A DNA stretch of 64,000 bases from Ranitomeya imitator (taxonomy: Eukaryota), in NCBI RefSeq assembly GCF_032444005.1, contig NC_091288.1, positions 220,658,001-220,722,000 on the forward strand. The letters run 5' to 3'. The notes beneath the pieces were generated by a model. That model made no database searches and was not told the origin of the DNA. It saw nothing but the letters and a program-made list of their open reading frames with translations. Position numbers and translations under genes: made by a program. This document shows, one piece after another, positions 11,425 through 44,740 of this stretch (position 1 is the stretch's first letter; every line of letters begins with the position of its first letter).

Positions 11425-14400
11425 TCACGCCGAGACCCTCCTCAGCTTCATCTGACTCCCCCGCAGCGTCAGTGGGTAATCCACCCAGGTGGTCCAGGAG
11501 AACGCGGGGTGCAGGGGGTCGGTCATGTGGTAGCGAGCGTTCAGGCCGGCCTCAGCGCAGCCCCCTGTGTGGTACCAGAAGCCTCCTCCCCAATACTCCG
11601 CGCAGTTCTGTGCGTGTCCGTCCTGGTCGTGGTCATACGTGGAGAACGTGTGTCCGGCGTGGAGGCTCAGCGCGTCCCCTGCAAAGACAAGGGCGGCTTA
11701 AAGGGACTGTCCATGTTATGTGCATGACCTCGTGAGTGAACTTCCCAGCCGTCTGCCCATATGACCGCTGCAGCCAATCATTGACCTCCAGATTCTGGTG
11801 TGAGATGACTGAGATCAGTGATTGGCTGCAGCGGTCACGTGGGTAGACTGCTTTAACTGCAGGAAAGTTTGCAGAGACCCCCAGAGCAGCAGAGGTGAAT
11901 GGGAAGTGGGGGTTAAAAGGTAATTTTTTATTTTTTTTTAATTCTGGACAATCCCTTTAAATAATCTCAACAAAACGTTTGCATGTAAGTGTCGTCCTCA
12001 CCGGCCCCTCCATCGCTGAACGCCCCGAGGTGCAGGCGGTATCCGTCACTGTCCGGGTTCAGGGCGTGGTGGGACAGGCTGAAGTTGGTGTACTGTGCTG
12101 TGACCCGCGTCCCCTCCGCATCCTCCAGCTCCACCCGCAGCTCGTAGTCGCCGCTCACGGTCAGGCGGTAAATATTCTGCAGTCCTGGTACCGAGGGGAG
12201 AGGTCAAAACGTGTAAAGACGCGGCCACCCATATGCAGTGTCGCCACAGTCACCGCACCCACAACCCAAGAATGGCAGCATGGCGCCCAACTCCAACACC
12301 CGCGCCGACCTCGGCCCCTGGGGATGTCCAACCTTCCCTCCATGTGAGGCTGCGGCACCGCCACCACTTACCGAGCCAGTACTCGCCGTCCGCGCTCCCG
12401 AAGCCACGCACGTAATCCTGCCAGGGGCGGCCAAATTCCTCCGAACCGTCCAGACGCCTCTGAAACACCTGTCAGGGGGCAGTTAGTGCAAAAGGATGGT
12501 ATAAGCCAACTACACCAGCTCACCTGTCACCCCCAGGAATACTCACCGTCCACACCAGCTCACCCGTCACTCCCCCCCCCCCCCTCCCCCTCCCCAGGAA
12601 TACTCACCGTCCACACCAGCCCACCCATCACTCCCCCCCTTCCCCAGGAATACTCACCGTCCACACCAGCTCACCCGTCACCCCCAGGAATACTACTCAC
12701 CGTCCACACCAGCCCAACCGTCACTCCCGCCGCCCCACCCCCAGGAATACTCACCATCCACACCAGCCCACCCGTCACCCCCAGGAATAATCACCGTCCA
12801 CACCAGCCCACCCGTCACCCCCAGGAATAATCACCGTCCACACCAGCCCACCCGTCACCCCCAGGAATAATCACCGTCCACACCAGCCCACCCGTCACCC
12901 CCGTGAATAATCACCGTCCACACCAGCCCACCCGTCACCCCCGTGAATAATCACCGTCCACACCAGCCCACCTGTCACCCCCAGGAATAATCACCGTCCA
13001 CACCAGCCCACCTGTCACCCCCAGGAATACTCACCGTCCACACCAGCCCATCCCCGATCACCCCCAGGAATACTCACCATCCACACCAACCCACCCGTCA
13101 TCCCCCAGGAATAATCACCGTCCACACCAGCCCACCCGTCATCCCCCAGGAATACTCACCGTCCACACCAGCCCACCCGTCACCCCCAGGAATACTCACC
13201 ATCCACACCAGCCCACCCATCACCCCCAGGAATACTCACCATCCACACCAGCCCACCTGTCACCCCCAGGAATAATCACCGTCCACACCAACCCACCCAT
13301 CACCCCCAGGAATACTCACCATCCACACCAGCCCGTAACCCCCAGGAATACTCACCGTCCACACCAACCCACCCATCACCCCCAGGAATACTCACCGTCC
13401 ACACCAGCCCGTCACCCCCAGGAATACTCACCGTCCACACCAGCCCACCCATCACCCCCAGGAATACTCACCGTCCACACCAGCCCGTCACCCCCAGGAA
13501 TAATCACCGTCCACACCAGCCCACCTGTCACCCCCAGGAATAATCACCGTCCACACCAGCCCACCTGTCACCCCCAGGAATAATCACCGTCCACAACAAC
13601 CCACCCGTCATCCCCCAGGAATACTCACCGTCCACAACAACCCACCCGTCATCCCCCAGGAATACTCACCGTCCACACCAGCCCACCCGTCACCCCCAGG
13701 AATACTCACCATCCACACCAGCCCACCTGTCACCCCCAGGAATACTCACCGTCCACACCAGCCCACCCGTCACCCCCAGGAATACTCACCGTCCACACCA
13801 GCCCACCCATCACCCCCAGGAATACTCACCGTCCACACCAGCCCACCCATCACCCCCAGGAATACTCACCGTCCACACCAGCCCACCCGTCACCCCCAGG
13901 AATAATCACCGTCCACACCAGCCCGTCACCCCCAGGAATACTCACCGTCCACACCAGCCCGTCACCCGTCACGTCACAGTACACTGGCAGGGGGCGCTGC
14001 GCCCCTTGTGGATATATGATGTAGACTCCGCTAGGGGGTCCTTGTAAGTCACAAATATCCTGGCAGTCTACAGGAAGCCGTCCACCGTCACACAGGGGCC
14101 GCAGAGCTGAGAAGGGGATAACAGTCACTAGTGTGGGGCCAGGATCACATGGAGCATGAACGTGCGTCTACATGTGCATATACAGTGAGCGTGCGTATAC
14201 AGTGAGCGTGCATATGTAGTGTGTGTATACAGTGAGCGTGCATACTGTATATAGTGGACATACATATTGTATAAAGTGAGCATACATACTGTAGTGAGTA
14301 TACATTGTGTAGTGAGCGTGCTCACCTGTGTGTGGATGTTTGTAGTGAGCATACGTATATAGTAAGCACATACACTGTATACAGTGTGTGCATACTGTAG

Positions 14401-15790
14401 TGAGCATACGTGCTGTATATAGTGAGTATACATTGTGTAGTGAGCATGCTCATCTGTGTGTGGATGTTTGTAGTAAGCATACGTATAGAGTTAGCATACA
14501 TACTGCATACAGTGAGTGTGCATACTGTAGTGAGCATACGTGCTGTATATAGTGAGTATACAGATATAATGAACATATTGTAGTGAGCGTACATACGGTA
14601 TATGGTGAGCATACACATAAGTGGACATGCTGTGGTGAGCGTGCTTTTCTGCGTCTCTCGGGGGTCTTCCTCACTATCCTGACACTAGTGAGATGATTTC
14701 TTCCCGCTGTAGAGAGCTCATTTGCATATTTTCCCATGGAGCATTGCCAGTAAGACCCCTTATATACTGGCCTCCTTATGTAGAGCCGTTCCTCCTCCCC
14801 CCAACTCTACTACAGCACCAAGCAGCGATGGCCGTGACCCCAGTAACGGCGCAGGGTGGTCCGCACTCACCTGCTTTACATCACTCACCTGGTGGAGACT
14901 TCTTCCAGCTGCCGGTGACTTGTGGAATAAGATAAAACCCAAGAACGAGGACGATCTAGAAGACAATGAGAAGATGTCTACAACCATCACATGGACCTGG
15001 GGACAGCACAGGTCCTGGGCCCTAATCAGGGGCCAAGAGATCGGGGGAGCAGATACAGACCCCACAGTAGGACCTCAGACCTGTGACGTGGGAGGTGAGA
15101 ACAGTGGATTCTTCACCTTCTCTTACATACTGTAGGTGTCCCAGCTGTTGCATTTATCATGAGAGGGACTGGGGTTTGCCCACCGGACCACCACAAAATG
15201 TCCGAATGGAGGCCCAAGCCCCCTGCTGCTTTCCACTAGCGATCTTGTGTGTGGCCAAGAAAGTCTCACACAGCTGTGGAAGGTGTGGAAACAAAGAGAC
15301 CTCCTGGTGGTAGAACAGGTGAGTATCCACCAGATGACTGGATGGAGCCATCATCTAATTCTGGACATTCAGTGAAACATGAAGACTTGGCTCACAGAAG
15401 AAGATGGTGGAAGATGGAGAAAACAAGAGTCAGGACAGGAGCAGCCTCCATATTGCCAGTGAAACTGGAAAGCATCAAGACCCAAAGAGAAGACGAGACC
15501 TTCTGGAGATTTCTGGATCCTGACATTAGGCCATGTGCACACAGTCAGGATTCTGCCCCAGGCGGCGCTCACGTGTCCACCAGCTCCTCATCTGCTTCTC
15601 TCAACAGAACATTGAGAAAAGTTGGAAAAGTTAGTAGTTGATACGTGAGGAATCCTGACAGCGTGCACACGGCCTACTGTCAGGATTCAGCACTAAAAGT
15701 GATTGCAGAAATGTAACTTTAATAACCTGGGGATGGAGGGAGAAAATGGCTTTCTAGAAAACACGGAAAAGTGCGATCTCTTACCTTCAT
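11425..15790 (-). CDS. MFAP4-like fibrinogen-domain protein, paralog A (most divergent), 255 aa, spliced
   Basis: Exons 15790-15785 (MK), 14955-14889 (signal peptide [15 protein letters not shown]..), 14106-13946, 12468-12372 (97 nt), 12184-12002 (183 nt) and 11678-11425; phases 0/1/0/1/1 as in MFAP4. Motifs VYCDVT..WT|[15 protein letters not shown]|LQNI and [12 protein letters not shown]. No stops or frameshifts. Exons 1-2 are predicted by analogy and less certain. Confidence 0.88.
11702..11956. mobile_element. T2/Kolobok-type MITE with TTAA target-site duplication
   Basis: TTAA|AGGGACTGTCCA ... TGGACAATCCCT|TTAA (one-mismatch TIR), with the internal palindrome CCGCTGCAGCCAATCA / TGATTGGCTGCAGCGG. 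Confidence 0.85.
12500..13965 (-). repeat. 36/40-bp minisatellite built from the paralog A exon 3 end plus donor (GGGCTGGTGTGGACG|GTGAGTATTCCTGGGGGTGAC)
   Basis: About 37 copies filling almost all of intron 3; some carry GTGATT instead of GTGAGT. Confidence 0.95.
14170..14610. repeat. Degenerate low-complexity repeat (TACAGTGAGCATAC-like) in paralog A intron 2
   Basis: Recurrent TAGTGAGCATAC/GTGTGCATAC motifs. Confidence 0.7.
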
Positions 15791-15843
15791 TGTAGAGAGT
15801 GTCCAGGATTCACTGATGTGATGAGACATTGCCACATAGTGAC

Positions 15844-15851
15844 TATATATA
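15844..15851 (-). promoter_or_regulatory. TATA-like box of paralog A
   Basis: TATATATA 54 bp upstream of the ATG AAG|GTAAG micro-exon. Confidence 0.5.
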
Positions 15852-19985: not shown

Positions 19986-19987
19986 GG

Positions 19988-22627: not shown

Positions 22628-25600
22628 TTAGACTTTGATGGCAAGCTTCATCTCACATGCCTTCAGTGAGTAGCGTTGCCCCTTCCATGATTTCCAAGTC
22701 ATACCCTTTGCATCTTGGTCATTTTTGCCCTTCAGGTATAGGCCATTGAGGTTGGCCATGTGACAGGCGTTGTACCAGGAGGCTCCACGAAAACTGGCTG
22801 CACAGTTACCTGCACTGTTGTCTCTGTCATTGTCATGAGTGGAAAACTTCATCTCGTTCTGAGTTTTCAGTGAATCTCCTGTTGAGATTGTAGACAAAGA
22901 TAATATTACGAAATGCAAAATATCTATGGTCAACACTCAAACCAGCCTTGACCTTACGTCCATCTTTTAGTTTGTGACCCTCACATAATATTTCCCATTT
23001 TTTAAGGCTTTGTTCCTTATACAATACAATGACCTCAATGGATAAGACTGTAAAGAGATCATCAAAATGAAGGCAGCAAAAGGGGTAAAGATGTATTGGG
23101 CAGGGATGTAGAAGACAAGATTTAATTTTCACCTGTACCAAAGAAAAACAACAAAGAACTTCCAAGAACCCTAAAAACCACTGAAGATGTCAACCTCTTA
23201 CCGATAGGTTTGTTGGGGTCGCCATCTTTAAATGCACCAATATAGAGCTTGTATCCGTCCTCCTCTTGATCAATGGCAAACGGAGACAAAGAGAAGGTGT
23301 CATAGATCCCATACCGAGCATCATTGTCAAAATCTACTAGGTCAACCCGGAGATAATAGGACCTCTTCTGGGTGAGGAGGTGAATGTTCTGCAGACCTGG
23401 AGATGATGGCAGGAGGATTTGTGATGTTATACATATCACAAGATTAAAAAGTAAAAAGAATATATAAAAGACAAACTATAAACCCTACCCAGCCAATATT
23501 CTCCATTCGCATTCCCAAACCCTTTCTTATATTCTTTCCAGCCACGATAGAAGTCAACACTCCCATCAAACCTCTTCTGAAACACCTGGAGAGCAGGAGA
23601 CAACCATTAATGGGTCCACATGTGAAAACGCAAGAAACTTAACTAATGTTTCTTGAACATATGGAATTCTCAAACTCTCATCACTATTCATGACTTAGTT
23701 GTTTGAAACTATTTTTAACCTGCAATCTCTCTCATAAATAAGTTTTCTACAGTCTGACAAGAATTCGTCTGGTGCATCAGCTTATATATGCTTATAGAAA
23801 ACAATGTAGACTTATCACTCTCACCCACAAAGCTGTGAACTGGACCACCCTACATCTGTCTACCACCCAACCCGTCCTCTCTACAGTGCTGCACCACCCT
23901 ACATCTCCTCCTCATCTCTGTCTACCACTTTCCTGTCCTCTCCACAGTGCTGCACCACCCTACATCTCCTCCTCATCTCAGTCTACCACCTTCCCGTCCT
24001 CTCCACAGTGCTGCACCACCCTACATCTCTTCCTCATCTCTGTCTACCACTTTCCTGTCCTCTCCACAGTGCTGCACCACCCTACATCTCCTCCTCATCT
24101 CAGTCTACCACCTTCCCGTCCTCTCCACAGTGCTGCACCACCCTACATCTCTTCCTCATCTCTGTCTACCACTTTCCTGTCCTCTCCACAGTGCTGCACC
24201 ACCCTACATCTCCTCCTCATCTCTGTCTACCACCCTACCTATCCTCTCCACAGTGCTGCATCACTCTACATGTCCTCCTCATCTCAGTCTACCACCTTCC
24301 CGTCCTCTTCACAGTGCTGCACCACCCTACATCTCCTCCTCATCTCTGTCTACCACCTTCCCGTCCTCTCCATGGTGCTGCACCGCCCTACATCTCCTCC
24401 TCATCTCAGTCTACCACCTACCTATCCTCTCCACAGTGCTGCATCACTCTACATGTCCTCCTCATCTCAGTCTACCACCTTCTCATCCTCTCCACAGTGC
24501 TGCACCACCCTACATCTCCTCCTCATCTCTGTCTACCACCTTCCCGTCCTCTCCACAGTGCTGCACTGCCCTACTTCTCCTCCTCATCTCTACCACCTAC
24601 CTGTCCTCTCCACAGTGCTGCTCAACCCTAAATCTCCTCCTCATATCTGTCAACCACCCTACCTGTGCTCTCCACAGTGCTGCACCACCCTACATCTCCT
24701 CCTCATCTCTGTCTACCACCTTCCCGTCCTCTCAACAGTGCTGCACCGCCCTACATCTCCTCATCATCTCTGTCTACCACCTTCCCATCCTCTCTACAGT
24801 GCTGCACCACTCTACATCTCCTCCTCATCTCTGTCTACCACCTTCCCGTCCTCTCCACAGTGCTGCACCACTCTTCATCTCCTCCTCATCTCTGTCTACC
24901 ACCTTCTCGTCCTCTCCACAGTGCTACACCGCCCTACATTTCCTCCTCATCTCTGCCACCTACCCGTCCTCTCCACAGTGCTGCATCAACCTACATCTCC
25001 TCATCTCTACCACCTACCTGTCTTCTCCACAGTGCTGCTCCACCCTAAATCTCCTCCTCATCTCTGTCTACCACCTTCCCGTCCTCTCCTCAGTGCTGCT
25101 CAACCCTACATCTCCTCCTCTTCTCTGTCTACCACCTTCTCATCCTCTCCACAGTGCTACACTGCGCTACATCTCCTCCTCATCTCTGCCACCTACACTC
25201 CCTCTCCACAGTGCTGCACCACCCTACATCTCCTCCTCATCTCTGCTTACCACTTACCTGTTCTCTCCACAGTGCTGCACCGGTTTGCATCTCCTGCTCA
25301 TCTCTGTCTACCACCATACCTGTCTTCTCCACAGTGCTGCACCACCCTACATTCCCTCCTCATCTGTCTACCACCATACCTGTTCTCTCCACAGTGCTGC
25401 ACCACCCTACATCTCCTCCTCATCTCTGCTTACCGCTTTCCTGTCCTCTCCTCAGTGCTGCACCACCCTATATCTCCTCCTCATCTCTGCCTACCACCTT
25501 ACCTGTCCTCTCCACAGTGCTACACCACCATACATCTCCTCCTCATCTCTGCTTACCACTTTCCTGTCCTCTCCTCAGTGCTGCACCACCCTATATCTCC

Positions 25601-26687
25601 TGCTCATCTCTGCCTACCACCTTACCTGTCCTCTCCACAGTGCTGCACCACCCTACATCTCCTCCTCATCTCTGTCTACCACCTTACCTGTCCTCTCCAC
25701 AGTGCTGCCCCGCTTTACATCTCCTCTTCATCTCTGTCTACCACCTACTTGTCCTCTTCACAGTGCTGCACCGCCCTACATCTCCTCCTCATCTCTGTCT
25801 ACCTCCTTACCTGTCCTCTCCACAGTGCTGCACCACCCTACATCTCCTCCTCATCTCTGTCTACCACCTACTTGTCCTCTCCACAGTGCTGCACCACCCT
25901 ACATCTCCTCCTCATCTCTGCTTACCACTTTCCTGTCCTCTCCTCAGTGCTGCACCACCCTACATCTCCTCCTCATCTCTGTCTACCACTACCCGTCACT
26001 CCTATTTCTCACCGTCCAGGGTCCACCATCGCTGCTCATGTCACAATACACAGGTACTGGGGGAGAGCTCAGACCACCAGGATAAATCAGGTACACGCCG
26101 TCTGAGGTCAGACCCTGAGCAAATACATCCGAGCAGTCAAGAGGGTGGCAGGTATCTCTGCAGGTATCGACTAGAAGGAGAGGACACAAGACGCGGTCAG
26201 AGGCCTCTGTAGATCAATTGCATCTAAAGATGTTATTACACTTCACCCTAAACTCTTTATAAAGTCAATCATTAAAATATCTCTACTTACAGCAAAATTG
26301 CAGATCTCATGGTTCTTAAATGATCCCTTAAAATATAATTTTCCCCGATTTACCTAGTTCCTATGTTCCCATGCCCCTTAATAGAGGGGTGGCGCTATAC
26401 TTACAACTACTCTGGTTCAGAAGTGCAGATCCTGGGGTCACGTAACCGCTCTGCAGCAGCAAAAAAAAGGCGAAATTCAGCGTCAGCTTCTGATTGGAGG
26501 AGAAGTATATAAATGTTATTACAGGTCAGTGTTGCCAGTAATATATCTGATCTGTCAATAATTAGGATCTTCGTCACATCGTTTATTCATATCCGGACTT
26601 ATAATTAGCCCATAGCGTACCAGGAATCATCTCTCACGGGTAACGTTGTATCACCGGACACTACCACCACTGTGTTCTTACCTCCAT
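22628..26687 (-). CDS. MFAP4-like fibrinogen-domain protein, paralog B, 263 aa, spliced
   Basis: Exons 26687-26682 (ME), 26489-26405 ([15 protein letters not shown].. signal peptide), 26170-26013, 23585-23489 (97 nt), 23396-23202 (195 nt) and 22878-22628. GT-AG throughout, frame intact. Motifs [58 protein letters not shown] at about 22238-22243. Confidence 0.9.
23845..25995. repeat. ~61-bp minisatellite (CTCTCCACAGTGCTGCACCACCCTACATCTCCTCCTCATCTCTGTCTACCACC..) in paralog B intron 3
   Basis: About 35 degenerate copies; abuts the exon 3 donor at 26012. Confidence 0.93.
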
Positions 26688-26724
26688 GGTCGGGAATATC
26701 TCCACCCTAGAGATGGCGTTCAGG

Positions 26725-28474: not shown

Positions 28475-28670
28475 GTTTTCTGATACCACCAGAGGTTGGC
28501 ACAATCTTCATCTCCGTCCACTGTAAGGTATGATGCCAGAATCTCACCCACCGGTGATGCCATGCTGGTAGTAACCATTTAGATTAGTGCCGTGACACTG
28601 GTTGTACCAGGAGGCTCCATGACAGATCCGAGCACAATTATCATCATCTGTATCTCCATCGTGACTATGG
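28475..28670 (-). pseudogene. Orphan degenerate copy of the MFAP4-like last exon
   Basis: HDGDTDDDNCARICHGASWYNQCHGTNLNGYYQHGITGG* then, after a frameshift or deletion, QWTEMKIVP; closest to paralog C exon 6. Confidence 0.8.
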
Positions 28671-29272
28671 ATCAGACATTTGTCCTGGTTATTGCTTAGA
28701 AGAGATTTCTCTCTGAATGAAAACACAAACCCAGCCCCCTCTCCTATAACGAGTTGGCTTCTGGATTTATCTACATTTTGGCATTCCTTGATTCCTGCCC
28801 ATTCAACAACCCAACAGTCGGCTCTTGCCAACTTTCACCATACCCAAAACCAAACCATTATCTGGTTCAATGTGGCTCATACTCAGGTACTTAGAGGGCA
28901 AGATCAGGATTGGACTGGTCCATGGTCCATTCGATCACCAGAAGATCCTCAGATTGACCATAATTCTAATACTACATTGGACCCCTACCAAAAGCTGATT
29001 CAAAGACAACCTTATTTGGTGGAGACTTTGGAGCCAATCACTAGAATACATTTTTTTAAGGGAAATAAAGAAAAATATTCACATCTACTCAACGGTAAGA
29101 AGTTAAGAGTTTTTTGATTAAAATGAACTTGTTTGTGGGTAAACCCTTGTAATGATAAAGTCCGGTTCTATAACTACATGCATTATTGAAGGTATGTACA
29201 TTGTACTGGCGCCGGTGATCCGCTACTCTCTGGTGGTTTCCCTCACTTAGATCATGTGACTTTGTGCCGCCA

Positions 29273-32200
29273 TCACTGTTGCTCTGACTTAGTGGGCGCG
29301 ATCTTCATCTCAGTCCTCTTTAATGAATAATAAGCTCCTTTCCACGTGGCCCACACAACGCCGGTGGCGTACTCCGCGGTGACGCCTTGCTGGTATTTCC
29401 CATTCAGATTGGCGCCATGACAGTGGTTGTACCAGAAGGCCCCGTGATACATCACTGCACAGTTACCGACATAGACGTCTCGGTCGCGGTCGTAGGTAGA
29501 AAAGTTCATCCGGTTGTGATTCGGTAGAGAATTTCCTGGAAATTAGAAAACTGAGCTGAATACGTTTCCTGGGGCAGAACTTTAGTATCTTTCTTTCCTT
29601 TGGACCCTGAATGGCGCCATTACTATATACTGGCATCGTATGGCATGAATATTTGTTTTGGATTGTATACTACACTACTTTTTATGTTTAGTTACTGTGT
29701 GGTGCTATTGTTTATGCACAGTATGGCGGTATTATTTGTGTACTGTATGGCAGTGTAATTTAGGCACTGCATTGCACTATTATTCATGCACTGTATGGCA
29801 GTATTATTATGCACTGTATAGCAGTATTATTTATGCACTGTATGACAGTAGTATTATGCACTGTATGGTAGTATTATTTATGCACTGTATGGTAGTATTA
29901 TTTATGCACTGTATTGCAGTATTTTATGCACTGTATAGCAGTATTATTATGCACTGTATAGCAGTATTATTTATGCACTGTATGGTAGTATTATTTATGC
30001 ACTGTATGGTAGTATTATTTATGCACTGTATTGCAGTATTATTATGCACTGTATGAGAGTATTATTATGCACTCTATGGCAGTATTATTTATGCACTGTA
30101 TTGCAGTATTATTATGCACTGTATAGCAGTATTATTTATGCACTGTATTGCAGTATTATTATGCACTGTATGGCAGTATTATTTATGTGCTGTACTGCAG
30201 TATTTTATGCACTGTATTATTTATGCACTGTATTGCAGTATTATTATGCACTGTATGGCAGTATTATTATGTACTGTATGACAGTATTATTATGCACTGT
30301 ATAGCAGTATTATTTATGCACTGTATTGCAGTATTATTATGCACTGTATTGTAGTATTATTATGTACTGTATGACAGTATTATTATGCACTGTATAGCAG
30401 TATTATTTATGCACTGTATTGCAGTATTACTATGCACTGTATGGCAGTATTATTTATGCGCTGTATTGCAGTATTTTATGCACTGTATTGCAGTATTATT
30501 ATGCACTGTATGACAGTATTATTATGCACTGTATAGCAGTATTATTTATGCACTATATTGCAGTATTATTTATGCACTGTATTGCAGTATTATTATGCAC
30601 TGTATGACATTATTATTATGCACTGTATAGCAGTATTATTTATGCACTGTATTGCAGTATTATTATGCACTGTATGACAGTATTATTTATGCACTGTATT
30701 GCAGTATTTTATGCACTATATGGCAGCATTATTTTTGCACTGTATGGCAGTATTATTTATGCACTATATTGCAGTATTATTTATGCACTGTCTGGCACTA
30801 TTATTCATTCACTGTATAGCTGTATTATTTATACACTGCATGACAGTATTATTTATGCACTGTATTGCATTATTATTTATGCACTGTATGGCAGTATTAT
30901 TATGCACTGTATGGCACTATTACATACCAGCACGTTTTGCAGGATCTCCCTCCTTAAAGCCATCAATATCCAGCTTGTACCCGTCCTCGTCAGGGTTGAT
31001 GGCCAGAGGTGAGAGGGAGAAGGAGTCATAGGTCACATGTCGTGTGTTGTTCTCAAAGTCCTCCATGTCGATGCGCAGACCATACGTCTTCTTCTGGGTC
31101 AGGAGGAAAATATTCTGTAAACCTAAATACATGATTGACAAGTAATAAGCATTGTGCCCCCAAATGTGAAGCCAGTGCCCCCAAAGTGAGGAAGGAGCAG
31201 TTACCCAGCCAGTATTCTCCGGAGGCTCGGCCAAAGCCAAACTTATAGTCTTCCCAACCCCGGTAGAAATCCACACCACCATCAAACCTCTTCTGGAAGA
31301 CCTGCAAGGAGACGAACAGTTCAGCTCCAGAGACACTGAGCCAGCGGGGAGCATCTGTGTGATGAGAGATGGCGGAGATGTCATCTATAGAGCGAGACTC
31401 AGACATTGGTAGGACGGGCGTCAGATGATGTCAGAGGAGCAGGTACTCACCATCCAGGGTCCTCCATCACCACTACATGCATCCAATGAGAGTATAGGGA
31501 CACACAATGATCTAAGACTATCATCCTCCATAACCTGAGCCTCCCATTACCATTTCTAAGACTTCTCTCATGCTGCACCATCTCTCTGAAATGTGCTACC
31601 ACAAAGTCACAGCGGCTACTTACCGTCCAGGGTCCTCCAGCGCTGCTCATGTCACAATACACAGATACAGGAGAGGAGCTCACACTGCCCAGGTATATGA
31701 GGTACACCCCGTCCGAGGTCAGTCCCTGCGCAAACACATCCGAGCAGTCGAGGGGGTGGCAGGTATCTCTGCAGATATTGACTAGGAGGAGAGGGCACAA
31801 GATGAGCTCATATAACGTTGTCATTACACCATAGAAATGTCCATTTAGTTACCGTAAACTTTCAGTCACTGAAAGGGAGCAGCCATGTAAGAGGGTTACA
31901 AATGACTTCTGGCGAAAGAAGGACTGGCCGATTGATTTGTGAGCTATCATCTCCCACACCTGGACTTGTGCTCATTGTGTGAGAGCGGTGGACTGTGGTC
32001 ACGTTCCTGCCCCCGAAGCCATCAATCGCATTGTAATATAGTGTAAATAATGTTATGCCTCTTTTACTGTGGCATCTAAGCAAGAAGTGCCTCGTAAGTA
32101 AATGTTCTTCTGTTAAAGAGTCGGTGGGGAATCTCCAGCCAGGGCCGTCCTGTAAATTATACTGAGGTTATGGCCTACCGGACAAGGCAGGCGTTCCTCT

Positions 32201-32790
32201 AACATCTATCGCCAGCCACATATCAAACACGATGTCCTATATCATGTCCTAAGAGTAGGGAACTCCAGAGTCAGTGCTACCAGTGAGAAGGCCTGAAATG
32301 TCCAGAGCCCGACTACACCTGGATTATAAATGGAGGTGTGTTAGACCCCTCGATAAAGGCTGACCTGAGCACCGGTCCATGTTCTGCTGGCCATTTGGTC
32401 ATACCTGAGCCCAGAACAACCAAGGAACCTTAGAGATGACCTAACAACCATGCGAGGCATGATCCCGGTCCGGAGGTTCCCAAATTGTAATCAATTTCTG
32501 CAGCCACATCTCTGTCTAATCTCACTAAACCCATTGATTTAGAATTCCCATCAGTGTCTCATCACCAGGGCAGAGAAGTGATGCCGTACTCACGATTAAC
32601 CTGGTTCAAAGGCGCAGAATGAGCAGAATGCAGGAGGAGGACGACGACGACAATCAGCAGCAACTTCTGATGGGGGAAGATGATAGAATACAATGAGATA
32701 TGTGAGAGTCGCCAACGATAGGACTTAGAACCTTCCAGAAGGTGACATTGTTTCACAGGATCCCCTCCCCCGATCTGCTCTTACCTTCAT
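29273..32790 (-). CDS. MFAP4-like fibrinogen-domain protein, paralog C, 263 aa, spliced
   Basis: Exons 32790-32785 (GCCACC ATG AAG|GT), 32666-32594 ([17 protein letters not shown] signal peptide), 31781-31624, 31301-31205 (97 nt), 31122-30928 (195 nt) and 29535-29273. Frame intact. P-domain [32 protein letters not shown]. Confidence 0.92.
29665..30922. repeat. AT-rich ~21-24-bp minisatellite (CAGTATTATTTATGCACTGTAT(G/T)G) in paralog C intron 5
   Basis: About 50 copies starting immediately inside the exon 5 donor. Confidence 0.93.
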
Positions 32791-32906: not shown

Positions 32907-35420
32907 GGTTGGAGAATTGGCAGAGGGTAAATAAATGCCCAGAATTATCGGAAGTGAGAGAAGAGTAGGGGCTTGTGCAATTACAGGGATGGCTCACCCC
33001 CATCAAAATCTGGGAGATTCCTAAAATTTGTTTTAAACAGATTCGATTTGGTTCTGAATCAAATGCAGTGTTAAAACCAACTTTAATAGAGATGATCCAA
33101 GCCTCCGACCCCTGGGTTACAGCCGGCAGCTCCAATTCTTTAGTTTCTGGAACATGAACCGCAAACGTGTCATTTCCATTCGCTCAACATTTCCTTACAA
33201 AAGTGACTGAAAATCTGCACATTTCACACAGAGTTCAGTCTCTTTAGGTCCCCTAAGTCCTCGTTTTCGATCAGTTTGGTCCTGAATTTGGTCTCATCTT
33301 GATATTTCTTCAATTTGGTCCATTTCACAACCCAAAGCAGATCTCTTACCTCATCTCATCGATCTTATCCGGATAAGTAGAAAAGAAGTTGCAAACTTTC
33401 AGCAGATTCAGACACATCTAAGACGAGTTACATAAAATCGTGGAATCAGCACAAGTGTAAGATCTCGATGTTTTATAGACAACAACGTGACTGTTGGGTA
33501 ACGATTTATTACTGTGGTTATAGTTCACTTTCTGAGGTTCTGCTCCTGGACAAACTCCTGTTCACATGTTACATCCAGACATGTTCATTGCAATCCACAG
33601 CTACAAGGTTGTGGTGGTTCTGAAGAAGAAATGATAACATCAAGGAGAAATCCACAAAACCTGACCGACCAGAGCTACTAACCCTGGCAACTCAAGGATT
33701 AGAAGACACAAGTTATCTCCATGAGTACAACCGATGATCAGATTCCCGGTACATGGACCTTAATGCACAGAGGCGCAGGTTATTGCCAGTGCATGTGCCC
33801 TTACAAAATGTCCCTCTAATAACCATAAGTGGTGTGTGGCCATCAGGTTCCCTCGCCTTCCTGCAACCCATTGTTCTTCCTTCATGGGAGCGCAGGCTAG
33901 ACTGAGGTTCTTGTCCAGCCCTGGGGTGGAAGAAGCTCAGATGAAAGCTGGGAATAAGAGGTCCTCTCCCTAAACTTCGGCAAGAGGAAGTCAGTTATAG
34001 TCAACCTTGCTATGGCCTTGTAGTCCTGAAGGATAAGGAAAGGTGCGATGGGGGCTCTCTGCCTTTCTAGGAGGGCTTACAATAGACTTCAAGACTTCAT
34101 CCTTACGCACTTTTTTGTACTTGGATAAAGGAAGTCAAAATGTCAGAAGTAAAGAAAAAAAAAGGAGAATAAATAACTCACAAAGAAAACTCCATAAGAA
34201 AAATGGAATAAGGAGAAGCTTTAACTACAGGCCATGAGAATTTCTGGAAGTAAAGAATGTGTGCGAGTTGCAAAAGAAAGAAACGTAAGGAGGAAGATCA
34301 GTCAAAATAACAAGTCTCGGAAAGCTCCAGAGAAACATAAAAAGACTTACGAGGAGACAACCAGTGGAGATATGATGACCGACGAGGACCCTCACATCTC
34401 ATGGCGTCACCTCAACAGCTCGGTCTCCACCACAACGTGGATAAAAGGTAACATAGACCTTGAGGCCTGTCTTGGCTTTTCAAAAGGTCTATTCCTGTAA
34501 AGTGTCCTGAGGAAGAAAGATTGGAAGGAGGACATTTCTAGACTACAGATGAATGAATTAAATTTACTTCAATTTTACAAAAAAATCAGATTTTTTTTGT
34601 GATTCATTTTGTGTAAATTAATTTCTAGAAAGCTGGGAAAGAGGAAAAGAAAAACAATAAAACCATACTCCGCTGCTTCCGCCCCCTCGCTGAGCCTTCA
34701 TCCTCTGTTTTACTTCTGCACAACACATTGGTTCCTCTTCCTCCATCTTCACTCTGTGATGGGAGAACCGCATGGATTGGACTTCTAAGATCACGACACA
34801 AGTCATGACATGACAACATGAGCCGCCTGACATCACAACCACAAAGCCTAGTTATTGCCGTAGACTGGTGGTAATTGGAGGCTCAGGTGAGCACAATGGT
34901 CAGGTTTTTCTACGCTTTTGTGCCTAGAGAGATCTCCGAGCAGAAGTCTCATTTTATTTACATCTCATAAGTTTGATCTGCGGAGCTGGAATATCAGCAG
35001 ATTTGCTCTCCACTAATTCACGACCCCTTTTTGTGATCTCGGATCCATTGTTTTTTGCAGAGATAATTGATCAAGATGGTTCATGAGTCGACTAGTAGCT
35101 ACAACAACTGGTGATGGAGACCAAACACAAGGGGCTAATCTTGGATTTCTGGCACTACGTCAGTTAAAAGCTTTAACACTATTCCCATTTTGAGTGCTCT
35201 TTTAGAAGGGAGCCCTGAAAATGAGCTCCTCACAAGAAGTCCTGCTAAATGAGACTCCCGATAATCATCTGTGATCGGTGGCACCAACACGAGGTCGACA
35301 ACTGTAGAAAAAGATGAAAAAAATGAAGATACGTCAGATAATCTCGCTACAACCAGATAATCGATCACCTACCGGTCGATCTTGCAGGATACCTCACCAG
35401 GGCTGAGAAACAAGTCAATT

Positions 35421-35516
35421 CATAGGTCACATGTCGTGAGTCATTATGAAAGTCCTCCAGGCCGATGAGTAGACGATACGTCTTCTTCTGGGTCAGGAAT
35501 AAAATGTTCTGAAAAC
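35421..35516 (-). pseudogene. Truncated MFAP4-like exon 5 fragment
   Basis: Intact acceptor then GFQNILFLTQKKTYRLLIGLEDFHNDSRHVTY, breaking off into unrelated sequence. Confidence 0.8.
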
Positions 35517-35911
35517 CTGAACAGATGAATGTGTAGTGATCGGCGTCGTGTCCCCTCAAATGTGATTACGTGGGGACAGTGCCTGATCCCTGAAAGACAC
35601 AGGACCAGACCTCGTCTCGCCACCAGGGGTCATTCATTCTCTATCCCTCTAGTGCGGAAAATGCTGGTAGATGTCTCCACTGTAGCCCACTCACTGGGCA
35701 CCCGCAGCAGATGTCTCCCAAAATGCAGCCCCAGCTAAACTAGTCCCCTCTTGGTGGCCAAACAGACCTGGGGTGTGATACCCTGAACATCACGGGCAGG
35801 GATCACATCACTGTGAAGAAGGAACAGAAGCAAAGCACATCCGAACAGGACTGGGACTAAAACAGTATGGCGGATGAGCTGGTGCCTTCCCGCGGCTTGC
35901 CGGGCCCAGCT

Positions 35912-36894: not shown

Positions 36895-37350
36895 GCTTTC
36901 TTCTGAATCTCCCTCATTAAACCCATCAGTATCCAGCTTGTTCCCGTCCTCCTCAGGGTTGGTGGCCAGAGGTGAGAGGGAGATGGAGTCATAGGTCACA
37001 TGTCATGTGTCGCTCTTAAAGTCTGCCATGGCGATACGTACGGTAGGTCTTCTTCTGGGTCTGGAGGAAAATGTCAGTAAACCTGTAGAAATCAACTTCA
37101 TGTCCCCCTCGAAATGTGAAGCCAATGACCCAATGAAAGGAAGGAACAGTAACCCAGCCAGTAGTCTCCAGAGGCTCGGCCAAAGGTAAACTTACAGTCT
37201 TCCCAACCACCGCCATCAAACCTCTTCAGAAAGACCTGAAGGAGACAAACAGCTCAGCTCTAGTCACGCTGAGCCAGCAGGAGGCAGCAGTGTGATGAGA
37301 GATGGAGGAGACATCATCTATAGAGCGAGACTCAGACATTTTTAATAATA
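36895..37350 (-). pseudogene. MFAP4-like pseudogene fragment (intron 3 end, exon 4, exon 5), paralog C lineage
   Basis: Exon 4 at 37235-37154 with a 15-nt deletion (VDFYR lost). Exon 5 at 37082-~36895 with frameshift and stop. The intron sequence 37240-37345 matches paralog C 31300-31410. Confidence 0.85.
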
Positions 37351-38711: not shown

Positions 38712-41700
38712 TCACTGCCGTCTTATCTTCATTTCCGTGGTCTTCAGAGAATAGTAAAGACCTCTCCACTGAGACCAGATGATGCCACTACCGAGGGACA
38801 GGTGAGCGCCAGGGAGATAAGCGCCATTCAAGTTGGCCAGATGACATGCTCTGTACCAGAAGCCACTGGTGAAGAGCGCAGCACAGTTCTGGAGATAGAC
38901 ATCACGGTCACTGTCATACGTAGAGAACTTCATTCCATTGTGGTAGGACAGAGAATCACCTGCAGATAATGAGGAGGAAGGTGGTTAGAAGTTGGTGCAG
39001 AATAACCCTATCCCAAACATGGGCTCACAATACCACTACCACTGCCCCAGAACAGAGTGCAGACTAACCCTGCAACTTCACCTAGAAGTGGGGACAAATA
39101 ACTCCTGCAACTGCTCCTAGAAGTCAGTGCAGACCTCCGCTACCACTAACCCTGAAAGTAAGTAAAGACTACTCCTAAAACGGCACCTAAAAGTGAGTGC
39201 AGACCACCTCCATCACTGCCCTTAGAAGCCACCTTTATCACTACCTCTATAAATGGGTACAGATTACCCCTGCAACTGCCCCTAGAAGTTGGGACAAATG
39301 ACTCCTTCAACTGCTCCTAGAAGTCAGTGCAGACCTCCGCTACCACTAACCCTGAAAGTGAGTAAAGACTACTAACAATATTAATAATAACTATGTTACT
39401 CCTACCACTGCACCTAAAAGTGAGTGCAGACCACCTCCATCACTGCCCTTAGAAGCCACCTCTATCACTACCTCTATAAATGGGTACAGACTACCCCTGC
39501 AACTACCCCAGGAAAGGATGCAGTCCACCATTCCTCTGCCCTTAGAAATTGGTACAGACTACCCTTACCACTGCCCCTTGAAGGAGGTGCAGACTACTCG
39601 TACCTCTGCCTAGAGAAATGGGTACAGACCACCCCTACCACTGCCCCTAGAAGTTGTAACAGACCACCTCTACCACTGCTCCCAGAAGTGGAGGCACACC
39701 ACCCCATTACCCATGACTCCTTGCGTTGGTTACCTGCCCCTCCGTCACTGAAGCCATCCACGTGCAGCGTGTAGCCGTCCTCCTCTGGATTGAGGCTGTA
39801 TGGGGAGATGGAGAACTCCGAGTACCTGGCGAAGGTCATGTTGTTCTCGAAGTCTCCCAGGTCGATCCTCAGCTCATACTTATTCCGGAGAGTGAGGAGA
39901 TACATGTAGTGTAGCCCTATGGGATGAGATATGGTGGGAATGAGCGATGCTCTGCGGAGGAGCGATGCTCTGCAGTAATCTGGAGGATGAGTTACCCCAT
40001 CCTACGTGACGACAGCTGTATAATGGAGGATTGATCCCTCTGTGGACCACCCCAAGGTGCTCCCAGGCTCCTGATTTACACTTACTTTGGGTTGGGGAGA
40101 TCACTTGAGACACAAGGAGATTTGCCAATCAGTGGTCTGGAAAGGATGGGCAGAGCCCACCGAGGGCACATAATGGTGGCCATATTGGTGATAGACATAC
40201 TACTGGTGCAACCAGTGCAGACGTACAAGGGCCCCCAAACAGCACATAATGGTGGAAAATGATGAAACATTGAGGGGTCCACACTGGCCCAGCACAGGGG
40301 CCCCCTCCTGTCCACCTTGGTGGCCACATAGGTGGTCAAAGGAGGACATTCACTCACCCAGCCAATACTCTCCGTCCGCTCTCCCAAAGCCAATCTTATA
40401 GTCATTCCAGCCCCGGTAGAAGCCCAGCGTGCCGTTGAACCTCCTCTGGATGACCTGGGCCCAAAACAGATGAATTGTATCAGCACAGCCAGCAGACGAG
40501 ACCCGGAGAACTCTCAGAGCCAGGACCCACCGTCCACTTTCCGCTGTCCGTGCTCATGTCACAGTACACGGGCACCGCGATGCCTGGTCCGGCCGGGTAG
40601 ATGACATATGGGCCGCTATCCTCGTCTCCGTTTTCACACACATCTTCACAATCTACAGGATACTGGTCAGAGGTGGAACACACTGCAACGACATCGGAGG
40701 GTGACACAGGGTCACACATCAGTCACATCCAGAGCTGCACTCACTATTCTGCGGTTACATCGTGTCTTATCCTCCAGTCACCTCCAGAGCTGCACTCACT
40801 ATTCTGCTGGTGCAGTCACTGTGTACATACATTACATTACTGATCCTGAGTTACCTCCTGTATTACACTCCAGAGCTGCACTCACTATTCTGCTGGTGCA
40901 GTCACCGTGTACATATATTACATTACTGATCCTGAGTTACATCCTGTATTATCCTCCAGAGCTGCACTCACTATTCTGCTGGTGCAGTCACCGTATATAT
41001 ACATTACATTACTGATCCTGAATTACATCCTGTATTATACTCCAGAGCTGCACTCACTATTCTGCTGGTGTAGTCACTGTGTACATACATTACATTACTG
41101 ATCCTGAGTTACTTCCTATATTATACCCCAGAGCTGCACTCACTATTCTGCTGGTGCAGTCACTGTGTACATACATTACATTACTGATCCTGAGTTACAT
41201 CCTGTATTATACCCCAGAGCTGCACTCACTATTCTGCTGGTGCAGTCACTGTGTACATACATTACATTACTGATCCTGAGTTACGTACTGTATTATACTC
41301 CAGAGCTGCACTCACTATTCTGCTGGTGCAGTCACTGTGTACATACATTACATTACTGATTCTGAGTTACATCCTGTATTATACTCCAGAGCTGCACTCA
41401 CTATTCTGCTGGTGCAGTCACTGTATACATACATTACATTACTGATCCTGAGTTACATCCTGTATTATACTCCAGAGCTGCACTCACTATTCTTCTGGTG
41501 CAGTCACTGTGTACATACATTACATTACTGATCCTGAGTTACATCCTGTATTATACCCCAGAGCTGCCCTCACTATTCTGCTGGTGCAGTCACTGTGTAC
41601 CTACATTACATTACTGATCCTGAGTTATCTCCTGTATTATACCCCAGAGCTGCACTCACTATTCTGCTGGTGCAGTCACTGTGTACATACATTACATTAC

Positions 41701-44700
41701 TGATCCTGAGTTACATCCTGTATTATACTCCAGAGCTGCACTCACTATTCTGCTGGTGCAGTCACTGTGTACATACATTACATTACTGATCCTGAGTTAC
41801 ATCCTGTATTATACCCCAGAGCTGCACTCACTATTCTGCTGGTGCAGTCACTGTGTACATACATTACTGATCCTGAGTTACATCCTGTATTATACCCCAG
41901 AGCTGCACTCACTATTCTGCTGGTGCAGTCACTGTGTACATACATTACATTACTGATCCTGAGTTACATCCTGTATTATACCCCAGAGCTGCCCTCACTA
42001 TTCTGCTGGTGCAGTCACTGTGTACATACATTACATTACTGATCCTGAGTTATCTCCTGTATTATACCCCACAGCTGCACTCACTATTCTGCTGGTGCAG
42101 TCACTGTGTACATACATTACATTACTGATCCTGAGTTACATCCTGTATTGTACTCCAGAGCTGCACTCACTATTCTGCTGGTGCAGTCACTGTGTACATA
42201 CATTACATTACTGATCCTGAGTTACATCCTGTATTATACCCCAGAGCTGCACTCACTATTCTGCTGGTGCAGTCACTGTGTACATACATTACTGATCCTG
42301 AGTTACATCCTGTATTATACTCCAGAGCTGCACTCACTATTCTGCTGGTGCAGTCACTGTGTACATACATTACATTACTGATCCCGAGTTACATCCTGTA
42401 TTATACTCCAGAGCTGCACTCACTATTCTGCTGGTGCAGTCACTGTGTACATACATTACATTACTGATCCTGAGTTACATCCTCTATTATACCCCAGAGC
42501 TGCACTCACTATTCTGCTGGTGCAGTCACTGTGTCCATACATTACATTACTGATCCTGAGTTACCTCCTGTATTATACTCCAGAGCTGCACTCACTATTC
42601 TGCTGGTGCAGTCACTGTGTACATACATTACATTACTGATCCTGAGTTACATCCTGTATTATACCCCAGAGCTGCACTCACTATTCTGCTGGTGCAGTCA
42701 CTGTGAATATACATTACATTACTGATCCTGAGTTACATCCTGTATTATACTCCAGAGCTGCACTCACTATTCTGCTGGTGCAGTCACTGTGTACATACAT
42801 TACATTACTGATCCCGAGTTACATCCTGTATTATGCTCCAGAGCTGCACTCACTATTCTGCTGGTGCAGTCACTGTGTACATACATTACATTACTGATCC
42901 TGAGTTACCTCCTGTATTATACTCCAGAGCTGCACTCACTATTCTGCTGGTGCAGTCACTGTGAATATACATTACATTACTGATCCTGAGTTACATCCTG
43001 TATTATACTCCAGAGCTGCACTCACTATTCTGCTGGTGCAGTCACTGTGTACATACATTACATTACTGATCCTGAGTTACCTCCTGTATTATACTCCAGA
43101 GCTGCACTCACTATTCTGCTGGTGCAGTCACTGTGAATATACATTACATTACTGATCCTGAGTTACATCCTGTATTATACTCCAGAGCTGCACTCACTAT
43201 TCTGCTGGTGCAGTCACTGTGTACATACATTACATTACTGATCCCGAGTTACATCCTGTATTATACTCCAGAGCTGCACTCACTATTCTGCTGGTGCAGT
43301 CACTGTGTACATACATTACATTACTGATCCTGAGTTACCTCCTGTATTATACTCCAGAGCTGCACTCACTATTCTGCTGGTGCAGTCACTGTGAATATAC
43401 ATTACATTACTGATCCTGAGTTACATCCTGTATTATACTCCAAAGCTGCACTCACTATTCTGCTGGTGCAGTCACTGTGTACATACATTACTGATCCTGA
43501 GTTACATCCTGTATTATACTCCAGAGCTGCACTCACTCTTCTGCTTCTCTCGTTAGAAGAGGTCTGCAGACGTCTAGTTGTCATGTCATTGCCCTCTATA
43601 GAGGAATCGTGACAGTCTGCAATCACATAGAAAGCTGCAGCCTTTTCTTCCGAGACCTGACAACCCCTTTAAGGTGCCTCTGCCCATACAACAGTGAAGA
43701 CACTGCTGCAGATTTGGAGGTGACTGGAGCATAGAATGAGGGATGGAGACAACGGATGTGATTGCTACATTGTATCCAGTGAGCGGATTATAAATGTCTG
43801 GGAATCTCTGTGAGAAATGTGGAATCCTTGGAGAATCCCTCGAAATCCGGCCCTGACCTCACGGTATAAATAGTCCATGACTGAGAACAGGTGCGAGCGC
43901 CGGGGCAGGAAACCAGCTGGAAAGTCGGGGTCTCCCGGGGTGGGGGGTAGACAGGGGCGCAGGTAGGGAACGCGAAGTGTCAGGCAGGGATCTGCTGGAA
44001 TCTGGCTGCAGATGTGAGCGAGGAATATGAGGTCATGGTGAGATCCCATTCCCCCACACTACACCCCAGCTCTGCTACACCGCCGTGGGCACTACAGCAG
44101 ATGCCAACCACCTGTGTACGACTATACAAAGAAGTGCGGATGTAGCAGGGCCGAGTGTGTCAGATATAGCAGAGCCGAGTGTGTCGGATATAGCAGAGCT
44201 GAGTGTGTCACATGTTGCAGAAATGAATTTGTTAGATTAAGCAGATCTGAAATGTTCAGAAGTAGCTGAGATAGAGTTTGCCAGATGTAGTTGAGTTAAG
44301 TTTGTCAAAAGTAGCAAAGTAAGTGCCCTTTCGAGGAGTGGGTTCTCTCTGGGACTATGAATGCACCAACAATGGAGCTGTAACGAATGAAATGACACAT
44401 TCAGCTCTGCTGCATCAGTCGGTGCGCTGTCTGTGTCTCCGGCCATCTTACAATGTAGGGATGACTTACAATGATCCCCGTTCTGCTTTCCTGATTGCTG
44501 ACTCCCCACCGAGCTGAGGACCACCAGCAGGAGGAGGATGATGTAGTGTCCAAGGCGCCCCGCAGCCTGCAACACAACAAGTCCTGGTCAACATGTACTA
44601 TCCCTTTAAGATGCATTGTCCCCCCCCACACGACCCATTAAGTCCTGCGGTGACCCCATTTTCATGCCAGCCTCATCTGAGCCCCCTAAGCCACATTCAT

Positions 44701-44740
44701 CCCCGGTGCCCCCCACAGAGGCGCTCCCCCTTACCTCCAT
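38712..44740 (-). CDS. mfap4: Microfibril-associated glycoprotein 4 (likely orthologue), 260 aa, spliced
   Basis: Exons 44740-44735 (ME), 44566-44470 (signal peptide, ..QNGDH), 40682-40531, 40454-40358 (97 nt), 39916-39734 (183 nt) and 38959-38712 (248 nt). [74 protein letters not shown] and [14 protein letters not shown] closely match recalled human MFAP4. AATAAA at 38434-38439; TATAAA at 44788-44793. Confidence 0.92.
39000..39700. repeat. Degenerate repeat (ACTACCCCTGCAACTGCCCCTAGAAGT-like) with internal block duplications, MFAP4 intron 5
   Basis: Recurring motifs; blocks near 39085-39170 recur near 39290-39370. Confidence 0.65.
40730..43535 (+). repeat. 86-bp satellite array 1 (CCAGAGCTGCACTCACTATTCTGCTGGTGCAGTCACTGTGTACATACATTACATTACTGATCCTGAGTTACATCCTGTATTATACT), about 32 copies, MFAP4 intron 2
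   Basis: ORF starts recur every 86 bp; 81-bp variants lack one ACATT. Confidence 0.97.
43536..43672 (-). mobile_element. T2/Kolobok-type MITE terminus joined to the 86-bp array
   Basis: Ends GACCTGACAACCCCT|TTAA (reverse complement TTAA|AGGGGTTGTC), the same terminal style as the MITE at 11702. The partner TIR was not found. Confidence 0.6.

Follow-up and report, generated by a model that had tools for sequence, protein, structure and literature searches.

An MFAP4 gene and three tandem MFAP4-like paralogs in the genome of the frog Ranitomeya imitator

Introduction

In mammals, MFAP4 is a single gene whose product has a role in the extracellular matrix. In fish, mfap4 is present in multiple copies that respond to infection; the tilapia protein agglutinates bacteria, and roles in macrophages have been described (PMC9265350). 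In amphibians, an MFAP4-like transcript differs between Rana temporaria exposed to Batrachochytrium dendrobatidis (Bd) and to ranavirus (PMC4481470), and the open-access literature searched for mfap4 in amphibians otherwise yielded a synteny remark (PMC3202601). No description of frog MFAP4 paralogs was found in the open-access literature on mfap4 in Xenopus, frogs and amphibians, and the 2022 review of MFAP4 (PMC9265350) contains no mention of amphibians or Xenopus. Within that literature, the paralog lineages of frogs seem to have been annotated without being characterised. The present study concerns a 64,000-nucleotide stretch of the Ranitomeya imitator genome (assembly GCF_032444005.1, contig NC_091288.1, positions 220,658,001 to 220,722,000), hereafter called the window, in which four MFAP4-type genes, g1 to g4, lie in tandem between a TRIM gene and an RNF112-like gene. 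We find that at this locus the MFAP4 ortholog, g4, is very probably accompanied by three tandem paralogs derived from two old duplications.

Results

Four intact genes in tandem

The window is free of N. A motif screen together with tblastn located fibrinogen-type last exons at approximately 11.4, 22.6, 29.3 and 38.7 kb, all on the minus strand only, and a degenerate one at 28.5 kb. The remaining common exons were recovered by an all-against-all comparison of stop-to-stop reading frames, and exon limits were set by the splice sites and by a 97%-identical protein of Ranitomeya variabilis. Within positions 11425-44740, four co-oriented minus-strand genes of six exons each were obtained:

38712..44740, minus strand: g4, MFAP4 ortholog, 260 amino acids; exons 44740-44735 (ATGGAG), 44566-44470 (97 nt), 40682-40531, 40454-40358 (97 nt), 39916-39734 (183 nt) and 38959-38712
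29273..32790, minus strand: g3, MFAP4-like, clade III, 263 amino acids; exons 32790-32785, 32666-32594, 31781-31624, 31301-31205 (97 nt), 31122-30928 (195 nt) and 29535-29273
22628..26687, minus strand: g2, MFAP4-like, clade III, 263 amino acids; exons 26687-26682, 26489-26405, 26170-26013, 23585-23489 (97 nt), 23396-23202 (195 nt) and 22878-22628
11425..15790, minus strand: g1, divergent GC-rich MFAP4-like gene, clade II, 255 amino acids; exons 15790-15785, 14955-14889, 14106-13946, 12468-12372 (97 nt), 12184-12002 (183 nt) and 11678-11425

All 20 introns are bounded by GT-AG. The exons measure 6, 67-97, 152-161, 97, 183 or 195, and 248-263 nt, with the same phases in all four genes. The first exons consist of two codons, ATGGAG or ATGAAG, followed by GTAAGR, and a TATA-like box lies 50-60 nt upstream; in g4 this is TATAAATA, about 50 nt upstream of the ATG, and in g3 it is TATAAA, 50 nt upstream. 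The signal-peptide exon of g1 (14955-14889) was missed by a screen for hydrophobic runs of at least 9 residues and found by a relaxed one, and the identity to RefSeq agrees with it. From end to end, the spliced proteins are 100% identical to proteins that RefSeq lists for R. imitator under the name 'microfibril-associated glycoprotein 4(-like)': XP_069591194.1 (P0133) for g4, XP_069591193.1 (P0122) for g3, XP_069591190.1 (P0127) for g2 and P0290 for g1. A second RefSeq isoform of g2, X2, has 250 amino acids (P0124) and aligns from residue 14 of the 263-residue form. The GC content of g1 is 0.63 and its GC content at third codon positions (GC3) 0.75, versus a GC3 of 0.54 in g2; the g1-type transcript of another frog has a GC3 of 0.76. 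The TRIM region adjoining g1, in the first ~14 kb of the window, reaches a GC content of 0.70.

An original prediction, made from the DNA letters, had described open genes with a two-codon first exon, a signal-peptide exon and exons of 97 and 183/195 nt, and this layout matches the spliced models; its outer limits coincide with the end of the g1 stop codon (11425) and the first base of the g4 ATG (44740). The same prediction had presented the cluster as the best candidate for an undescribed system. That description does not hold, since RefSeq contains a model of each of the four genes for R. imitator, and four matching genes exist in R. variabilis. Nor is the cluster a system of a new kind; its genes already figure in public annotation.

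Membership of the MFAP4 family

Exons 3-6 of each gene matched Pfam Fibrinogen_C (PF00147) above the curated cut-off, at profile positions 3-55, 44-82, 73-134 and 136-220. In sequence comparisons with the PDB, g1, g2 and g3 scored 224, 290 and 308 bits against human MFAP4, followed by FIBCD1 (158-235 bits) and then the ficolins; thus, the paralogs side with MFAP4 rather than with ficolin, FIBCD1 or ANGPTL, as had been anticipated. The AlphaFold2 model of g1, the copy that has diverged most, with a mean predicted local distance difference test score (pLDDT) of 88, found its best PDB match in human MFAP4 (7ZMK; TM-score 0.94, root-mean-square deviation 1.8 Å), with FIBCD1 second, and its TM-scores against structures of the fibrinogen-related domain (FReD) ranged from 0.86 to 0.95.

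A signal peptide is present in all four copies, and about 10-20 residues separate the signal-peptide region from the first FReD cysteine. The g1-g4 proteins contain no Gly-X-Y run that would mark a collagen-like region and no transmembrane or coiled-coil region of the kind found in FIBCD1. The RGD motif is absent from all four (g4 has NGD); in the sequence sample examined, RGD was limited to mammals. In a phylogenetic tree whose outgroups were a sea-urchin FIBCD1-like and a mollusc FReD protein only, true ficolin, FIBCD1 and ANGPTL lying outside the sample, g1-g4 were all placed among vertebrate MFAP4 sequences. The four genes are members of the MFAP4 family within the FReD superfamily. Only g4 is an MFAP4 ortholog in the strict sense, and g1, g2 and g3 are paralogs.

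Two old paralog lineages in frogs

In searches with full-length proteins, nearly all frog genomes yielded several 'MFAP4-like' proteins. The maximum-likelihood tree comprised 91 proteins and contained three well-supported clades. Clade I (support 100/100) unites tetrapod MFAP4, including g4. Clade II (100/97) joins g1 with sequences from Ascaphus, Bombina, Xenopus, Pelodytes, Pelobates and many neobatrachian frogs, together with one caecilian sequence; this lineage extends across frogs and probably across amphibians. Clade III (100/100) groups g2 and g3 with frog sequences only, from Bombina and Discoglossus upward. The fish sequences lie outside clades I-III, and the order of these clades relative to fish and lungfish is not fixed in the trees. 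Four proteins had been dropped from the tree: the long branches Pleurodeles P0139, Gastrophryne P0103 and Pyxicephalus P0118, and the Limanda 'ficolin-2-like' protein, which groups with fish MFAP4 sequences and was unusable as an outgroup.

A g2/g3 duplication confined to dendrobatids was rejected (log-likelihood difference 123, p = 2e-33 in the approximately unbiased (AU) test). In a tree of exons 4-6, a g2 clade of hyloid, ranoid and myobatrachoid frogs received support of 97/92, and a single hyloid clade for g2 and g3 was rejected (p-AU 0.0004), the group tested having been chosen after the first tree had been viewed. On this sequence evidence, the g2/g3 split predates the neobatrachian radiation, because the g2 clade spans hyloid, ranoid and myobatrachoid frogs and the hyloid clade is rejected.

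R. variabilis carries four Fibrinogen_C genes of 260, 263, 263 and 255 amino acids in the same order and orientation. The g3 protein is 96.6% identical to its ortholog there (P0001), and the g2 protein is 96% identical to that of R. variabilis and 92% identical to that of Dendrobates tinctorius. In X. tropicalis, the order is an MFAP4-type gene, a g2/3-type gene (237 amino acids), a g1-type gene (257 amino acids) and, in convergent orientation, a TRIM gene that encodes RING, B-box and PRY/SPRY domains. The cluster had originally been taken for a recent, lineage-specific expansion; the three gene types are found in all major frog lineages sampled, with the same gene order in X. tropicalis, which contradicts this.

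Exon 3 of g2 and g3 departs from the other exons. Its amino-acid identity is 83-98% between g2 and g3 of one species, as against 65-81% between orthologs of different species, whereas exons 4-6 show the reverse; the pattern covers R. imitator, R. variabilis, Hyla, Bufo and Mixophyes. Leptodactylus is an exception, its paralogs being only 69% alike in exon 3. At the DNA level, exon 3 with its intron flanks is 84% identical between g3 (31619-31810) and g2 (26008-26199), and the other exons are 69-77% identical. The pattern resembles that of repeated gene conversion limited to exon 3 of g2 and g3, and such homogenisation would blur the whole-protein tree.

Divergence of the ligand pocket

Residue numbers refer to the 255-residue mammalian MFAP4. 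The roles of residues in human MFAP4 were taken from PMC11091212, and the acetyl-pocket residues of FIBCD1 from PMC3908420. All four genes and all clades keep the Ca2+ ligands S186, T187, D191 and D193, the C199-C212 disulfide and W235; D191, D193, C199 and C212 are nearly invariant across clades I-III. The pocket residues Y405, H415, Y431, A432 and W443 of FIBCD1 correspond to S203, H213, Y229, A230 and F241 of MFAP4. At these positions, g3 has Y, H, Y, A and A, that is, four of the five acetyl-pocket residues, and g2 has F, H, D, A and Q. In g4, the first three positions are F, H and L and the fifth is L, with A or G at the fourth in clade I; in g1, the first three are W, A and L and the fifth is Y, with Q, H or K at the fourth in clade II. 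Position 241 therefore differs in every copy (L in g4, A in g3, Q in g2, Y in g1). The predicted divergence of pocket residues between the copies is thus real, from YHYAA in g3 and FHDAQ in g2 to a g1 pocket without His213.

Each clade has its own signature. The N87 glycosylation site, both salt bridges of the MFAP4 tetramer (R94-E158 and R105-D159) and L202 are retained in g4, which fits a true MFAP4. Clade III has Y or F at position 203, mostly keeps H213, Y229 and A230 and varies strongly at the rim positions 202 and 241; a CxxxC pair directly before the FReD domain is the hallmark of this clade. Within it, g3 retains both R94-E158 and R105-D159. Clade II has fixed or nearly fixed substitutions of H213 to A/G, N216 to G, L202 to Y, S203 to W, R94 to Q, E158 to S/N and R105 to N, and lacks both salt bridges. 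Most proteins of clades II and III, g1, g2 and g3 among them, no longer have the N87 site.

Constraint on the copies

Transcripts were sought among short contigs that Logan had assembled from public sequencing runs, taken as RNA-seq from one project. Contigs with uninterrupted proteins were found for the g1 type (L001), the g3 type (L002) and the g4 type (L003-L005, which are listed in 48 blocks of the collection). L001-L003 are without introns, indicating that they are spliced transcripts, and their source is probably a hyloid frog. Ratios of nonsynonymous to synonymous change (dN/dS) were calculated by the Nei-Gojobori method (NG86) with 95% bootstrap limits, at dS values to the contigs of 0.42-0.57. 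They were 0.37 (0.23-0.53) for g1, 0.27 (0.18-0.38) for g3 and 0.15 (0.09-0.22) for g4; these limits, well below 1, exclude neutral evolution for the three genes. Purifying selection acts on g1, g3 and g4. The ratio between g2 and g3 was 0.18 (0.09-0.26), with dS near saturation, and the evidence for constraint on g2 is indirect, consisting of its intact frame and the identities of 96% and 92% to the R. variabilis and D. tinctorius proteins. By dN/dS, g1 and g3 evolve about twice as fast as g4, and the g1-g3 proteins change 2-4 times faster than g4. The original prediction's requirement that the paralogs not evolve neutrally is borne out by ratios of 0.15-0.37 with upper bootstrap limits of at most 0.53.

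Neighbouring genes

Three exons of flanking genes were identified in the window:

2545..3171, plus strand: first coding exon of the flanking TRIM gene (RING and B-box; Pfam RING families and zf-B_box)
10379..10984, plus strand: last coding exon of the flanking TRIM gene (PRY/SPRY), convergent with g1; Pfam PRY 4.6e-24, SPRY 2.5e-23
63182..63568, minus strand: last coding exon of an RNF112-like gene that continues outside the window; residues 5-63 match 341-399 of 9JJU, E = 8e-9

The TRIM gene has the class IV domain set of RING, B-box and PRY/SPRY. Among the 60 PDB matches listed for its PRY/SPRY exon, the nearest solved relatives are the B30.2 domains of pyrin, BTN3 and TRIM21, with no TRIM69 chain. 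In Nanorana, as in X. tropicalis, the g1-type gene is followed by a convergent TRIM gene; the counterpart PRY/SPRY exons in other frogs lie at 16442-16987 of L007 and 21527-22081 of L008. The amino-acid identity of the R. imitator exon to the TRIM beside the g1-type gene is 93% in X. tropicalis and 90% in Nanorana. Judged by this comparison, the TRIM neighbour is a slow-evolving gene, because its PRY/SPRY is 90-93% identical among Ranitomeya, Xenopus and Nanorana. Restriction-factor TRIMs that evolve fast are not known to show such conservation. Between the first and last TRIM coding exons lies a fragment of a non-LTR (long terminal repeat) retrotransposon with endonuclease and reverse-transcriptase parts (6974-9471, minus strand).

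On the other side, the open reading frame at 63182-63568 matches the C-terminal end of 9JJU, a crystallised Xenopus laevis RNF112 construct, and continues in a hydrophobic stretch. The flank had been called RNF112-like from the start, and the match to the X. laevis protein (E = 8e-9) supports the name. A second reverse-transcriptase fragment of a non-LTR retrotransposon was found upstream of g4 (50536-50895, minus strand).

Decayed copies and tandem repeats

Between the genes lie three decayed exon fragments, each with about 80% DNA identity to parts of g3. These and the minisatellite of g1 are as follows:

36907..37340, minus strand: remnant of g3 exon 4, intron 4 and exon 5 with part of intron 3; 80% DNA identity to 30944-31407, with a 5-residue deletion in exon 4 and a frameshift
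35420..35565, minus strand: remnant of part of a g3-type exon 5 and the adjoining intron; 80% DNA identity to 31026-31169, no Pfam match
28529..28717 (28552..28640 in DNA), minus strand: remnant of the first part of a g3-type exon 6; in-frame stop after ...GITGG (tblastn), 79% DNA identity to 29377-29465
12506..13972, minus strand: minisatellite that fills almost all of g1 intron 3; unit of about 40 bp (Tandem Repeats Finder, blastn)

The frameshift, deletion and stop in the g3-derived fragments accord with the birth-and-death debris that had been described from the sequence. The minisatellite unit in g1 intron 3 consists of the last ~27 nt of exon 3 and the splice donor. The array holds 29 copies of TGGACGGTGA[GT]T, 17 of which have the consensus donor GTGAGT, the first being the one employed in the RefSeq model. 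The length of the unit is no multiple of three, and a frame that continues from exon 3 into the array runs into a stop in the space of about 30 codons. Intron 3 of the g1-type genes of X. tropicalis and Nanorana has no array of this kind.

Other arrays are a 61-bp unit repeated 35 times in g2 intron 3 (23855-25989), a 24-bp unit repeated 52 times in g3 intron 5 (29706-30922) and, in the intergenic region between g2 and g1, a 28-bp unit repeated 67 times (20028-21909). An 86-bp satellite occurs twice in inverted orientation with 94-95% identity, in g4 intron 2 (40782-43545) and about 15 kb upstream of g4 (58246-61853). All four genes therefore have an intronic array of at least 1 kb. The large tandem repeats were considered as coding sequence and rejected, as they sit in introns or between genes. 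At 52848-58235 there are long arrays of a 31-bp unit, and between them a duplicated block (approximately 54876-55610 and 56679-57332) with repeated GACCAATCAG-containing units.

Discussion

In this study, the four genes are best explained as one MFAP4 ortholog and the descendants of two old duplications. One duplication would have founded clade II, represented here by g1, whose lineage is present across frogs and probably amphibians. The second would have founded clade III, found in frogs only, within which g2 and g3 probably separated before the neobatrachians diversified. Each gene is predicted to encode a secreted, Ca2+-binding FReD protein that forms oligomers, and g4 may carry out the role of MFAP4 in the extracellular matrix. 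For clade III, the CxxxC motif and a pocket of the FIBCD1/ficolin type (aromatic residue, His, Tyr and Ala) with a variable rim suggest that g2 and g3 may be soluble, lectin-like binders of acetylated ligands, a tentative assignment to which we give a little less than an even chance. Clade II would bind another ligand, because the pocket histidine and the salt bridges are lost and the substitutions are fixed throughout the clade. A pattern-recognition function is plausible from these residues and from the work in fish.

A bolder view would recognise two MFAP4-derived families of frogs, and in the case of clade II perhaps of amphibians as a whole: clade III as a soluble, collagen-less, ficolin-like lectin with an acetyl-type pocket, a highly variable rim and a CxxxC pair by which it could oligomerise, and clade II as a protein whose pocket was rebuilt once and then frozen. 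We consider this doubtful. If it were true, the very long conservation of the clade II pocket would imply a new, conserved ligand, and the proteins would be amphibian-specific humoral recognition molecules, relevant to the defence of the skin against chytrid fungus and ranavirus.

The original prediction went beyond this, seeing pattern-recognition lectins in an undescribed, lineage-specific expansion that would make up, together with an antiviral TRIM69-like gene, a single innate-immune locus. The differences between the copies at pocket residues agree with such a view, as do the immune roles of fish mfap4 paralogs (PMC9265350), the difference in an MFAP4-like transcript between Bd and ranavirus exposure in R. 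temporaria (PMC4481470) and the conserved neighbourhood of g1 and the TRIM gene in X. tropicalis and Nanorana. However, the genes are annotated in RefSeq, their types are found throughout frogs, and a dendrobatid-specific origin is rejected. The TRIM gene and g1 are convergent and therefore have no common promoter, and a PRY/SPRY with 90-93% identity is a mark of slow evolution, so that adjacency is the sole support for a joint locus. We regard the prediction in this form as improbable. More serious, though still on the unlikely side, is the alternative that the paralogs are matrix proteins rather than lectins, and divide the MFAP4 role in elastic fibres or microfibrils among tissues or life stages. 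MFAP4 is the closest solved relative, g3 retains the R94-E158 and R105-D159 salt bridges, and the steady purifying selection, with pairwise dN/dS values that bear no sign of an arms race, would suit proteins of this kind. Other residues argue otherwise: F241, which the human protein needs for binding tropoelastin and collagen (PMC11091212), has become A, Q and Y in g3, g2 and g1, both salt bridges are gone from clade II, clade III is highly variable at the interface residue L202, and most members of clades II and III, g1-g3 among them, have lost the N87 site. The three decayed fragments attest to the death of copies at this locus, and the proteins of g1-g3 change 2-4 times faster than g4, from which one might suppose that g1-g3 are redundant duplicates drifting to loss. 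This is highly improbable. The frames are intact, the gene types have been retained from Bombina and Ascaphus to Ranitomeya, spliced transcripts exist and clade-specific residues are fixed; dN/dS values well below 1 refute drift for g1 and g3.

Some observations speak against the reading we prefer, that of two old paralog lineages with lectin-like properties in clade III. With the whole protein, the AU test does not reject a single hyloid clade for g2 and g3 (p = 0.26). The five-residue acetyl pocket is incomplete in all four copies: where FIBCD1 has W443 (MFAP4 F241), g3 carries Ala and g2 Gln, and g2 further has Asp in place of Tyr431. The role-defined residues were mapped by sequence alignment, and the mapping is less sure in loop 221-230 of g1, where the pLDDT is 78. 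The transcripts stem from a frog other than R. imitator, with contig orthology assigned by best hits, and no close orthologous cDNA of g2 was found among these contigs. Frogs presumably have true ficolins; therefore, the argument made for fish, in which MFAP4 fills in for missing ficolins, is not transferable to them.

In sum, this study places frogs between mammals, with their single MFAP4, and fish, with many copies: frogs have one true MFAP4 and two old, constrained paralog lineages in a fixed order. The locus offers a clean and datable case of tandem duplication in which the ligand pocket diverged and exon 3 was homogenised, a result of modest, comparative value. It also supplies two candidate recognition proteins of amphibians, for which X. 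tropicalis has a compact three-gene version of the cluster.

Compared with mammalian MFAP4 (7ZMK, 8UN7), the frog genes likewise encode a signal peptide, a short N-terminal region and one FReD, and they too have six exons and lie beside RNF112 (the mammalian exon layout is that given in the original prediction). They keep the Ca2+ site S186/T187/D191/D193, the C199-C212 disulfide and W235/W238, and g4 has the N87 site and both tetramer salt bridges. Unlike the mammalian protein, they have no RGD (g4 has NGD), and F241 is replaced in every copy. The N87 site is absent from g1-g3, H213 and both salt bridges are absent from g1, and g2 and g3 have a 4-residue insertion (an exon 5 of 195 rather than 183 nt) and the N-terminal CxxxC.

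The mfap4 families of teleosts such as catfish, zebrafish and tilapia resemble the frog cluster in being tandem, multi-copy and without RGD, and provide the best functional analogy for g1-g3. Their expansions look independent of those of frogs, the deep branch order not being fixed in the trees, and teleosts are said to lack ficolins. With FIBCD1, M- and L-ficolin and tachylectin 5A (TL5A), the frog proteins share the fold (TM-score ~0.9), the Ca2+ site and the disulfide that links this site to the S1 pocket, and g3 has Y, H, Y and A at FIBCD1 Y405, H415, Y431 and A432. Unlike the ficolins, the frog proteins have no collagen-like region, and unlike FIBCD1, no transmembrane or coiled-coil region. 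The fifth pocket residue of the acetyl-binding FReD lectins (W443 in FIBCD1, Tyr in the ficolins and TL5A) is A in g3, Q in g2 and Y in g1, the pocket histidine is missing from g1, and all four frog genes stand nearer to MFAP4 by sequence.

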